Origin: Blepharisma stoltei ATCC 30299
Lineage: Eukaryota > Protista > Ciliophora
Direction of reading: 5' to 3'
NCBI GenBank assembly: GCA_965603825.1
Contig: CBFDEM010000035.1
Span: 682,001 to 746,000 of the forward strand
DNA: 64,000 nt
The translations under genes were made by a program, and so were the position numbers. The stretch's first letter is position 1, and each line of letters starts with the position of its first letter. The notes beneath the pieces were generated by a model that was given only the letters and a program-made list of their open reading frames with translations, searched no databases and was not told where the DNA came from. Of this stretch, positions 23,481 through 41,189 are shown piece by piece.

Positions 23481-23554
23481 TGGTCCCAGTGAGGATCGAA
23501 CTCACGACCTCTGCGTTATTAGCACAGCGCTCTAACCAGCTGAGCTATGGGACC
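23481..23554 (-). tRNA. tRNA-Ile (anticodon AAT)
   Basis: Minus strand GGTCCCATAGCTCAGCTGGTTAGAGCGCTGTGCT-AAT-AACGCAGAGGTCGTGAGTTCGATCCTCACTGGGACCA: 7-bp acceptor stem, D-arm, TTCGA T-loop. Confidence 0.96.
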
Positions 23555-35546: not shown

Positions 35547-36236
35547 ATGATAAGAAGACTTGTAGCTGAATTCGTAGGGACTTTCTTTCTAGTCTTTGGT
35601 GTAGGTGTGAGTCAAGGCCAGCCCTTCACAGTAGGAGGAACTTTATGGGCTGCTCAGATTTTCACAGGATTTTCTTCAGGTGGGCAATTCAACCCTGCTG
35701 TTACTTTAGCAATAATCACAAGAAAGCACATTACCAAAACCCTTACAACACAAGAACTCAAAGAGCTGATGTGCTTCATTGCCGCTCAAATAACTGGATC
35801 TATCATGGCAGCCCTCCTTTCTTGGGGAATCGTCCGATATGCTGCATATTTTGACGTTGCGCTTGGGTATAATAGAGGTGAGGCGTTTTTGGCTGAATTT
35901 TTATACACTACACTGCTCTGCGCAAATGCAATTATGGCTGGGGTTTTAACAGATTCGAATTTATTGGTAGGAGCCGCTGTTTCTATGAGTGTTACTGCTG
36001 GAGATTGGTCTGTTGGGAATATCTCTGGAGGGTGCTTTAATCCAGCTGTTGGGTTTGGAGTGAATTTGATACACTTGTTTAAGGATGGAGACCATTTTGG
36101 AAACACTTGGATTTACATAATTGCGCCGCTTATTGGAGGAATTATGGGAGGACTTACTTCGACGATTTTTATAAAAGAGTTGCAAAGCCAAAGGAGCAAG
36201 GTCGCAGAAGAAGATGATCATCAGCATTCAACTTAA
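35547..36236 (+). CDS. Aquaporin / MIP family channel
   Basis: LVAEFVGTF, SGGQFNPAVT, FLAEF, SGGCFNPAV, WIYIIAPLIGG. Confidence 0.95.
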   Translation: MIRRLVAEFVGTFFLVFGVGVSQGQPFTVGGTLWAAQIFTGFSSGGQFNPAVTLAIITRKHITKTLTTQELKELMCFIAAQITGSIMAALLSWGIVRYAAYFDVALGYNRGEAFLAEFLYTTLLCANAIMAGVLTDSNLLVGAAVSMSVTAGDWSVGNISGGCFNPAVGFGVNLIHLFKDGDHFGNTWIYIIAPLIGGIMGGLTSTIFIKELQSQRSKVAEEDDHQHST

Positions 36237-36425: not shown

Positions 36426-37430
36426 ATGGAAGAAGAGAAAGAAGCATTAGAGAGCATAAAAGCATTATTCAAGGACGCCTTTATCAGGAACAGCTACTTA
36501 GATGATGAAAGCGTCACCAATGAAGAGCTACTAACCCTAGAGGACCTTTCACCTCTCGAAGTATATGAAAATTTAAAAGATCTCATAACAAATCTGCTTT
36601 TGTTTAAGGAAAACGTCATAAAATCCAACACTGAAACCACAAGCTTAATTAAACGCACAGAACAATTCGAAAATATGCTGCAGAAGCTGGAAGGCGAAGT
36701 CCGGGCTCACATAAGGACCGAGCAGCAATTGAAACTTCACATTGAAACGTGCCAATGCAAAATTGACGAGCTGGAAAGAAAAAGCTTAAAAGACCGCCAG
36801 CTTATTGAAACACAAACACAAGATATCGAGCAAAAAGCACAACAAATAGAAAAACTTAGAAAAGAAAAACCTATTTCTTCAGATGATGCCAGAATCAGGT
36901 CAAAAGATATTGAAGACAAATACAAAGACGAAATTTCGAAAATTGCTACACAGAGGAAACTCTCTTTACTTCATGGAGGGAGTGAGCTATTGAAGCCTAA
37001 TAAGGAAAAAGTGGCTTCAAAGATAAAAAACACACATGAGAGAAGTGAAAAATATGCGTATTTAAGATCACTTCTCGACCAAAAAAGCAAAGAATGCGAT
37101 CAACTAAGAAAAGATTACGAAAATTCTAACGAAAAAATTAACGACATTCGAGAGCAGCACAAGTCTAAAAACCCAATCAGTATGCTTCACCCAAAATTCA
37201 AATCAATGAGCTCAAGACATCCTGGATCTGGAGGAAAACTCAGTCGAAACTCCTCCACAAAAACAATGTGCGAAGTAATTGATTTATTTAAAAAATCAGA
37301 CTCAGCGCCTTTTTTTAAAAAGGAAACCCAGGATAATTTGAACTCTGCAAGAAAAAAGCGGAAAGAAGGCAAGCACGCAAGGAGTAACTCTGATAACTTC
37401 AAAGCTATGTTAATCGCTAAAGAAAACTAA
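36426..37430 (+). CDS. Coiled-coil hypothetical protein
   Basis: 334-codon ORF; FENMLQKLEGEVRAHIRTEQQLKLHIE heptad segment. Confidence 0.75.
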   Translation: MEEEKEALESIKALFKDAFIRNSYLDDESVTNEELLTLEDLSPLEVYENLKDLITNLLLFKENVIKSNTETTSLIKRTEQFENMLQKLEGEVRAHIRTEQQLKLHIETCQCKIDELERKSLKDRQLIETQTQDIEQKAQQIEKLRKEKPISSDDARIRSKDIEDKYKDEISKIATQRKLSLLHGGSELLKPNKEKVASKIKNTHERSEKYAYLRSLLDQKSKECDQLRKDYENSNEKINDIREQHKSKNPISMLHPKFKSMSSRHPGSGGKLSRNSSTKTMCEVIDLFKKSDSAPFFKKETQDNLNSARKKRKEGKHARSNSDNFKAMLIAKEN

Positions 37431-37457: not shown

Positions 37458-37508
37458 CAGCCCTCTCCAACTTTGCTAGGATTTAAGCAAAGTCTTCACA
37501 TTTGGCTG
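37458..37508 (-). promoter_or_regulatory. SECIS element (type I-like) in the 3'UTR of the HMG-SelW gene
   Basis: Minus strand CAGCC-AAAT-G-TGAA-GACTTTGCT-TAAATCCT-AGCAAAGTT-GGAG-AG-GGCTG: 5-bp helix I, internal loop, UGA/GA core, 9-bp helix II, apical AAA. Confidence 0.82.
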
Positions 37509-37513
37509 GGGGT

Positions 37514-38245
37514 TTAAGGGAAATAAGGTTTTACAGCTTCTATCAGATCTGTGAGGGTCAAATAAGTGCTGCTTTTGTGATAAACGTCATTTTTCTCAGA
37601 ACCAATTTGTACTTGTACGTCAATTTCTCTTGATTTTCTGCTTTGCACTATAACTTGATCGCTTTTTAAATCAAGATTATTTATTAAAGACTTTGCCACT
37701 CTTTCTGAATTTCTTTTATATCCTCAAGATCCACATAAATACACAAAAACTTTTTTACTAGCAGCATTATCTTCACTTTTAATTTTTTCTTTTGGTTTTT
37801 CATCTTTTGTTTCTTCGGTTTTTGAAGGGACTTTTACATTTCTCTTCCTTTCTGGATTTTCAACTGGGGTTTTTGATCTTTTTTTATTATTTTTTGTTTC
37901 TTCCCCATCATCAATATATGCACTATCATTGCTTTTTGCCCCACAACTTAATGTAAAATAACCATCCCGCTCAAGTTCGGCAAGCTGGGACTTGTATCTT
38001 TTTGTATCATTTTCATGCTGTTTTTCAAAGCAGGACTTTTCTTCTTCAGAAAATTCCTTCCATCTCTTTTTTCCAATTTGACTAAGCTGTTTTAAAGTTA
38101 ATTTTTTGCCATCTTCTATAGGCTGAGTTTTGAGGTCTTCAATGAAGAACTGGTATGAGGACAAAGGCTTTCGAGGGTAAAGCTTATTTTCTTGTTTATC
38201 ATAAATACAGTCACTTGGAATTGATCTCTTTCTCCGTTTCTTCAT
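37514..38245 (-). CDS. HMG-box / SelW-like (Rdx) fusion, candidate selenoprotein (243 aa; TGA at 37724-37726 = Sec174)
   Basis: NLS-like MKKRRKRS; HMG box PRKPLSSYQFF..KRWKEFSEEEKSCFEKQHENDTKRY. C-terminal VFVYLCGS[TGA]GYKRNSERVAKSL matches SelW VRVVYCGAUGYK. SECIS-like hairpin in the 3'UTR. Confidence 0.85.
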
Positions 38246-38466: not shown

Positions 38467-38928
38467 TTAGGATTGGTTTGCGATATCTTCAAAGTTTTGT
38501 CCACCGACTAAATCCGGCACTTCTTCTTCTCCACCTTCTTTAGCTCCAGCTTGAACTAGCTCTTTTAGGACGTCTAGGTTTTTAGGCCCTAATTGAGTAA
38601 TAATTCCTGGCATCAGATCTTTAATAGTTTTCACTTCGCCTGCTCCTGAAACCACAAAGAAATTGTCTTTTATGTTAGCAGTCACTTGTGGGTTTACAAA
38701 ATGAAGCACAGTGTTGTCGTCTTTAAAGAAATTGACTTCTTCTATTGCTGGCAATGGCTGCACTCCGAGTTTTGATATAGAAGATCGTAATTTCTTGTCA
38801 TCTACCATAGTGGTTTTGTGAGGAACTTTGTTCTTGCGCTTCATTGAGCCTTTTCCACCGATTCTTGCGGATTCGCCAAACTTAGCTGCAAGTTTCGCAC
38901 GAGCTTGAAGGACTTCTGGGTCTTCCAT
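38467..38928 (-). CDS. BTF3: Nascent polypeptide-associated complex beta subunit
   Basis: RIGGKGSMKRK, DDKKL, IEEVNFFKDD..HFVNP, MPGIITQLGP, VPDLV..NFE. Confidence 0.95.
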   Translation of the reverse strand: MEDPEVLQARAKLAAKFGESARIGGKGSMKRKNKVPHKTTMVDDKKLRSSISKLGVQPLPAIEEVNFFKDDNTVLHFVNPQVTANIKDNFFVVSGAGEVKTIKDLMPGIITQLGPKNLDVLKELVQAGAKEGGEEEVPDLVGGQNFEDIANQS

Positions 38929-40404: not shown

Positions 40405-40962
40405 TTAATTACTAGTTACTTTTCTCGCTTCTTTTGCAAGCTCTATATAAGGCTTTCTTTCTTCTTCACCCATCTCTTTCCAGGCCGCTCTCAACTCTTT
40501 GGCTCTTTCTCTATATTTCAGCTCTGGCTTTTTTTCTTTGAGGGAAAGTATCTGACTCTTGTAGTAGCAGTTGAATGGAGTTGTCCTGGAGCGTTTGGTT
40601 TTTTGGGCAGCTTGCTTTGGGTTTTGAATGTAAGACTCATTGGCTTTAGAAAGTTTGGCTTCTACCTCTTCGAGTTGTTTTATGAGAGCTTCTTTTTGGG
40701 AAGTAAGGTCTATAATATTCTTATATACCTCTTTTTGTTTCTTGTGAAGGTCATTGAACTTTTCTTTTTCAAAAGCGTCAATTTCATGCCAGAGCTTGGA
40801 GAGGAATTTGGTGTCTTTGATATCGGAGTTTTCCTTTGCAAAAAGCCTAAAAGGTGCGAGGGGTCTTGAGATTAGGCTTCTGTGAATTTTAGATTCACTA
40901 GCTGAGGTGCTTTGTTGTGCTTCAGATTTTGGCTCGTTAGTTTGTGACATTTTATAAATCAT
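40405..40962 (-). CDS. HMG-box protein with two boxes
   Basis: RPLAPFRLFAKEN..LSKLWHEIDAFEKEKF and TTPFNCYYKSQ..AKELRAAWKEMGEEERKPYIELA. Start may be 40950. Confidence 0.85.
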   Translation of the reverse strand: MIYKMSQTNEPKSEAQQSTSASESKIHRSLISRPLAPFRLFAKENSDIKDTKFLSKLWHEIDAFEKEKFNDLHKKQKEVYKNIIDLTSQKEALIKQLEEVEAKLSKANESYIQNPKQAAQKTKRSRTTPFNCYYKSQILSLKEKKPELKYRERAKELRAAWKEMGEEERKPYIELAKEARKVTSN

Positions 40963-41189
40963 TTTTCGGCTAGCTATTTATAGTTTCGCGTATCTTTGGC
41001 GGTACTTAATTTCTTACTGTCTTAAAAATGATCAAGAGTATAAAAAATATTTAAATAGAAAAAAGGAAGGATTATCAATATTTTTAATTATATTAAAAAC
41101 CAGGCAAAATTATTTTATTTTTCCTAATCATCAATATCAATAATCGTCTTTTTAACAGTTAAAATTCATCTTCATATTTTAAATTTAAA

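Follow-up and report, generated by a model that had tools for sequence, protein, structure and literature searches.

A probable HMG-box–SelW-like selenoprotein of Blepharisma stoltei, a ciliate that reads UGA as tryptophan

Sequence evidence indicates that the ciliate Blepharisma stoltei very probably possesses a selenoprotein in which an HMG box is joined to a divergent SelW-like domain. Its gene lies on the minus strand of the window (the whole stretch of 64,000 nt of genomic DNA analyzed here, to which unprefixed coordinates refer). The CxxU site, the paralogs, the SECIS-type hairpin behind the gene, the decoding machinery and a set of control genes together make selenocysteine (Sec) at residue 174 highly likely. 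Genome-wide searches covered the B. stoltei assembly (41.46 Mb, 64 contigs).

Gene and reading frame

The coding sequence (38245–37514, minus strand) is a single open frame of 243 codons up to its TAA stop (37514–37516), needs no intron, and shares its start with the MMETSP transcript ORF P0005. It opens with a basic stretch, MKKRRKRS (38222–38245), that resembles a nuclear localization signal (NLS) and may act as one. An HMG box follows at residues 24–90 (37976–38176; Pfam PF00505, 33.6 bits against a cut-off of 25.4, E 5e-8), whose closest PDB matches are HMGB/NHP6-type boxes and which, to judge from its family, would bind and bend DNA. The K/E-rich linker (residues 91–162; 37760–37975) begins with an E-x-x-G-Y/F extension common to several B. 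stoltei HMG proteins, and leads into the SelW-like (Rdx-fold) domain at residues 163–243 (37517–37759). No AT-hook (R-G-R core) occurs anywhere in the protein, and the search for a close unfused HMG parent turned up nothing better than 33%.

Codon 174 (37726–37724) is the only in-frame TGA, in the context V-F-V-Y-L-C-G-S-[TGA]-G-Y-K, with Cys171 of the CxxU motif at 37733–37735. The single Trp of the protein, W62, lies inside the HMG box, aligns with the invariant Trp column of these domains and is encoded by TGG (38060–38062). Reading the frame thus bears out the original prediction of a lone TGA beside a TGG-encoded HMG-box Trp. That prediction had also warned that a UGA = Trp annotation would write W here, and the database protein P0004 indeed carries W174. 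P0004, with its W, served as input for fold prediction and HMM scans, while for sequence searches the pieces before and after the UGA were run separately.

Several other genes were noted nearby: a second, distantly related HMG-box gene (40405–40977, minus), a NAC-domain gene (38467–38928, minus), an aquaporin (MIP) gene (35547–36236, plus) and a tRNA-Ile (23481–23554, minus). Elsewhere in the genome, L084 (G000:C2:196724) is another HMG fusion, seemingly (by eye) with a 3-methyladenine DNA glycosylase domain.

Fold and family of the C-terminal domain

The AlphaFold (AF2) model of the C-terminal domain (pLDDT 86) has the order beta-alpha-beta-beta-beta-alpha; codon 174 provides the U in the CxxU that follows the first strand of this SelW-like predicted fold. 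Its top structural match is the SelW-related entry 2fa8 (VIA; Z 8.8, rmsd 2.6, 78 residues aligned), and mouse SelW reaches Z 7.0. SelW-related entries also top the Foldseek ranking (E about 1e-3, TM about 0.68), and ESM Atlas features give 0.86–0.90 to Rdx clusters. The domain is predicted to work like SelW.

Profile searches returned no match of the fusion domain to Pfam Rdx (PF10262) or TIGR02174, and Pfam and NCBIfam otherwise yielded noise. The paralog P0006 scores 12.2 of 22.6 bits (PF10262) and 15.7 of 34.2 bits (TIGR02174) over the full model length, values computed with W in place of U. A hallmark of the Rdx family is a G-x-F-E-I/V motif before strand 3; this is missing, with R-E-I-D-V in the fusion protein and Q-L-K-V in the paralogs. 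Since the cut-offs are unreached and the motif is lacking, we call the domain SelW-like and not a formal Rdx member. The proposed Rdx/SelW-type assignment therefore holds for the predicted fold, the CxxU and the paralogs, while the Pfam Rdx search does not support it.

The Pfam Rdx matches that do exist in the genome were rejected as relatives: apart from a Cys-type SelT, they form another family, in which the Trp codons are real. One family of long proteins (L007–L013, L025–L031) has an Rdx-like domain at the N-terminus and an H-x-W-C-T motif, and TGA and TGG alternate at its Trp positions.

The SECIS-type hairpin

A 51-nt element (37508–37458, minus strand) begins 5 nt past the TAA and 215 nt past the TGA. 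It consists of a 5-bp helix I (37508–37504 with 37462–37458), a G-UGAA core (37499–37495) opposite GGAG (37468–37465), a 9-bp helix II (37494–37486 with 37477–37469) and an apical AAA. It has the two helices, UGAN/NGAN quartet and apical As of a form I SECIS, with G, not A, before the UGA. Its folding energy is -19.2 kcal/mol (z -3.35), a value reached by 1 of 200 shuffles. Both the SECIS-like architecture and the distance of about 215 nt that had been proposed are thus confirmed by folding and coordinates. A SECIS descriptor matches once in the window against 0.03 times per Markov-shuffled window, a favourable figure given that the descriptor was composed after three known examples and was not blind.

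Rfam SECIS_1 (RF00031) matched neither the hairpin nor anything genome-wide, and likewise missed the glutathione peroxidase (GPx) and thioredoxin reductase (TrxR) elements described below. A covariance model built from the GPx SECIS alone matched neither the window hairpin nor that of TrxR; being made from one sequence it is too sequence-bound, so it is a failed test and lends no support. A loose SECIS pattern gave about 19,500 matches and was useless.

The main gap in placing the SECIS within the mRNA is the shortness of typical heterotrich 3′ UTRs, whose medians are 21–26 nt (10.1101/2022.04.12.488043), whereas the SECIS of the fusion gene requires a 3′ UTR of at least 56 nt. Between the fusion gene and the stop of its convergent neighbour, at 37430, lie 83 nt.

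Stand-alone paralogs and relatives

The SelW-like family of this genome has three members: the fusion gene and two stand-alone genes of 86 codons, each with CxxU and a SECIS, at L054 (348–608; G000:C27) and L055 (2492–2752; G000:C30). Both start M-E-S-K-K-V-R-V-W-I-C-G-S-[TGA]-G-Y and align end to end with the C-terminal domain of the fusion protein at ~30% identity, with blastp E-values of 1e-10 and 1e-13. TGA is kept at the CxxU of all three genes, whereas the paralogs use TGG for their remaining Trp residues. Their public records (CAG9321014.1 and CAG9322148.1) likewise show W at the TGA.

An alignment of the three SECIS cores spans 37 nt, needs no gap and has all 27 of 27 helix II cells paired. 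Four of the nine helix II pairs have changed on both sides, a result reached by 5 of 500 shuffles, with the caveat that only three sequences enter the comparison and two of them are close. From the protein alignment and the gapless SECIS cores it follows that domain and SECIS share their ancestry with the stand-alone genes; most simply, a SelW-like copy was joined behind an HMG-box gene.

As a separate observation, 14 nt at the Sec codon (37722–37735 in the window, and the equivalent stretches of L054 and L055) are identical in the three genes, including three synonymous sites, despite ~70% protein divergence. Either codon bias or some local signal for decoding could explain this identity.

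P0005 is 90% identical to the fusion protein, has the same start, is recorded as a complete ORF and, read with the standard code, terminates at L-C-G-S. As it spans the HMG box to LCGS, both lie on one transcript. It appears to keep a stop-type codon after LCGS, as expected if TGA follows, and it probably derives from B. japonicum, a species included in MMETSP. Beyond Blepharisma, the anticipated orthologs did not emerge from searches of limited reach: phmmer, querying 1.84 billion representatives with the piece behind the UGA, gave three repetitive, spurious matches, word-index searches returned Blepharisma proteins only, and a metagenome pattern scan gave three chance bacterial matches. The HMG–SelW fusion thus seems to be found only in Blepharisma, with its SECIS carried along.

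Other SECIS-type genes as controls

Because the Rfam SECIS model is silent genome-wide, genes with a Sec position known by homology served as controls. Among the GPx genes, L020 alone carries TGA at the catalytic position. It is also the only one followed, just past its stop, by a G-UGAA...GGAG hairpin, complete with 9-bp helix and apical As; no GUGA...GGAG hairpin was found behind the seven Cys-type GPx genes. TrxR ends in G-C-[TGA]-G, contains no further TGA and has a SECIS of form II. The window hairpin has the same GUGA-type build as these Sec-type GPx and TrxR elements.

A pattern drawn from the three elements (window, GPx and TrxR), followed by a by-eye screen for a complete helix II, yielded five further perfect hairpins, four of them directly behind genes with UGA at a Sec-type place; two of the five lie behind the SelW-like paralogs L054 and L055. 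Other matches (L057–L060, L071, L072), which had imperfect helices and lay in coding or unrelated sequence, were discarded. In all of the resulting eight elements (L014, L020, L033, L053–L056, L070), UGA is preceded by G (A-U/A-GUGA), the 3′ side reads U/G-GAG, and the start lies within ~30 nt of the stop. As the search pattern demanded a GUGA core, AUGA-type elements were invisible to it.

The remaining three hairpins lie behind L070, L053 and L056. L070 (G000:C54:37240-38000, minus) encodes a soluble protein in which a PUB-like domain is recognizable by eye and whose C-terminus reads G-G-[TGA]-R, ahead of its SECIS. L053 (about 2560–2800; G000:C21:487559) is a small membrane-type ORF with TGA at codon 3 and at the penultimate codon; with its SECIS, it is possible that Trp and Sec are both encoded within one mRNA. 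L056 (about 2600–2800; G000:C30:527756) is a SelK-like small ORF of uncertain gene model that ends G-G-C-G-R with its Cys as TGT; a perfect SECIS stands behind it, its sole TGA is codon 3, and no Sec codon is obvious. SelT (L024, G000:C40:204129-204539) and SelD (L042) are both Cys forms without a SECIS. B. stoltei probably has at least seven selenoprotein genes, and the three of them that were checked are all publicly annotated with W.

UGA decoding and the selenocysteine machinery

In Blepharisma, UAR codons are stops and UGA encodes Trp (10.1101/2023.10.09.561518). In agreement, long ORFs of the genome read through TGA, and the HMG-box paralogs L081 and L085 have TGA on the invariant HMG-box Trp column. 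The genome's Trp codons comprise 44,087 TGA and 78,535 TGG, i.e. ~36% TGA (10.1101/2023.10.09.561518), so a lone TGA means little. The reader of UGA is a near-cognate tRNA-Trp(CCA), whose anticodon stem has 4 bp; a cognate Trp reader is absent, and a B. stoltei tRNA-Sec(UCA) has already been published (10.1101/2023.10.09.561518).

We find this tRNA-Sec (75.6 bits, anticodon TCA) together with genes for SepSecS, SelD (Cys form), eEFSec and SBP2 (E 1e-20 against human SBP2), and an uncertain PSTK candidate at C5:584527-585162; another PSTK match was rejected as KTI12. All of the machinery that the original prediction called for (tRNA-Sec, SBP2, eEFSec and SepSecS) is thus in the genome. Its central idea, that UGA means Trp elsewhere and Sec here, draws support from the HMG-box Trp column, the GPx and TrxR controls, the paralogs and the SECIS.

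Proposed mechanism and alternative readings

Most likely, a copy of the small SelW-like gene, complete with its 3′ SECIS, was fused in frame to the end of an HMG-box gene. During Sec decoding in eukaryotes, SBP2 binds the SECIS and eEFSec delivers Sec-tRNA to the UGA. In the fusion mRNA, SBP2 would bind the GUGA/GGAG kink-turn and eEFSec would bring Sec-tRNA(UCA) to the UGA 215 nt upstream. The sole other reader would be the 4-bp-stem tRNA-Trp(CCA); since Sec-tRNA is cognate and tRNA-Trp near-cognate, Sec should win at codon 174. A UGA in an mRNA without a SECIS would be read as Trp, and a failed Sec insertion would plausibly yield a full-length Trp form, not a truncation.

Were UGA174 simply read as Trp, the product would be an HMG protein whose CxxW domain is catalytically dead, and its SECIS would be a relic from the SelW parent. 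The high share of TGA among Trp codons (~36%), the strong divergence of the fusion domain from its paralogs, and L056, as a hint that a SECIS may survive where no Sec codon is obvious, would all be compatible with this. A relic should have decayed, however, and the hairpin is fully paired and carries compensatory changes after ~70% protein divergence; moreover, C-G-S-[TGA]-G-Y is intact in the fusion, and a stop-type codon seems to be kept in the ortholog P0005 as well. We therefore consider a plain Trp reading highly unlikely. There is next to no chance that the fusion is an artefact, made of two genes or of one whose UGA is removed by an intron: we found no point in support, the frame is single and has no second start, and the independent transcript ORF P0005 spans the HMG box to LCGS at 90% identity. 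Blepharisma introns are 15–16 nt long, and no GT-AG intron of that size lies over the TGA.

Partial termination at UGA174, giving a 173-residue HMG-only protein, finds some footing in the weak in vitro recognition of UGA by Blepharisma eRF1 and in the depletion of UGA from the last 25–30 codons of genes (10.1101/2023.10.09.561518). Its likelihood is nonetheless very slight, as UGA174 lies 70 codons before the stop, beyond the depleted zone, the domain past it is conserved with the paralogs, and UGA in B. stoltei has been observed solely as Trp (10.1101/2023.10.09.561518). Purposeful mixed decoding, with Sec inserted when selenium is plentiful and Trp when it is scarce (the selenium-dependent switch suggested in the original prediction), would be an addition to the Sec reading and no alternative to it; the two full-length forms would both bind DNA and differ in redox activity. 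With UGA lacking a stop meaning, failed Sec insertion would default to Trp and the HMG box would survive either way, so some leakage is likely. Such leakage need not regulate anything, though, and would hold for all B. stoltei selenoproteins, while in Euplotes the choice between Sec and Cys is set by position and SECIS (PMC3737529). A regulatory purpose thus seems doubtful, and Sec at residue 174 remains our preferred reading.

Relation to known systems and significance

The novelty of a Trp/Sec UGA had been overstated. Dual use has been inferred for Condylostoma and Parduczia (PMC4967479), for Amoebophrya (PMC6394959) and, with both meanings inside one gene, for Blastocrithidia (PMC12153298), and in Euplotes UGA as Cys and Sec was shown by experiment (PMC3737529). 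In all of these, as in B. stoltei, one codon specifies two amino acids with the SECIS choosing between them; the difference is that UGA in Blepharisma has no regular stop role. As the fusion gene has a single UGA, its two meanings are divided between genes and do not meet within its mRNA.

Like the SelW/Rdx family (SelW, SelV, SelT, SelH; PF10262, TIGR02174) and eSelW of Euplotes, the fusion protein has CxxU past the first strand, G-Y after the U, a thioredoxin-like fold of ~80 residues and a 3′ SECIS. Unlike them, it falls under the HMM cut-offs, lacks G-x-F-E-I and has an N-terminal HMG box. SelH (SELENOH) combines an AT-hook, an NLS and CxxU (PMC13437758), and is similar in being a selenoprotein of Rdx fold that has a basic NLS and a module for DNA binding, whereas the fusion protein has a folded HMG box as a separate domain and no AT-hook. 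Since the redox domain of the fusion descends from the genome's own SelW-like genes, this likeness is probably convergent. SelV (SELENOV), which reportedly arose from a SelW duplicate, also places a SelW-like domain behind an added N-terminal region; that extension is low-complexity and mammalian, whereas the Blepharisma extension is an HMG box. Within a partial coverage of the literature, we found no report of an HMG–SelW fusion or of a Blepharisma selenoproteome, and the combination of an HMG box with a SelW-like selenol domain is apparently an undescribed architecture.

By analogy with SelH, the protein has perhaps an even chance of acting in the nucleus as a thiol/selenol oxidoreductase or redox sensor tethered to chromatin. 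That it is a lineage-specific chromatin selenoprotein whose CxxU:CxxW ratio is set by selenium, and thus a selenium sensor based on codon ambiguity, is an improbable extension; if true, a DNA-bending protein would gain or lose its redox center without truncation or decay. As B. stoltei can be cultured and its UGA has no regular stop role, its selenoprotein genes allow a test of the competition between cognate Sec-tRNA and near-cognate tRNA-Trp, and could show what is made under selenium shortage.
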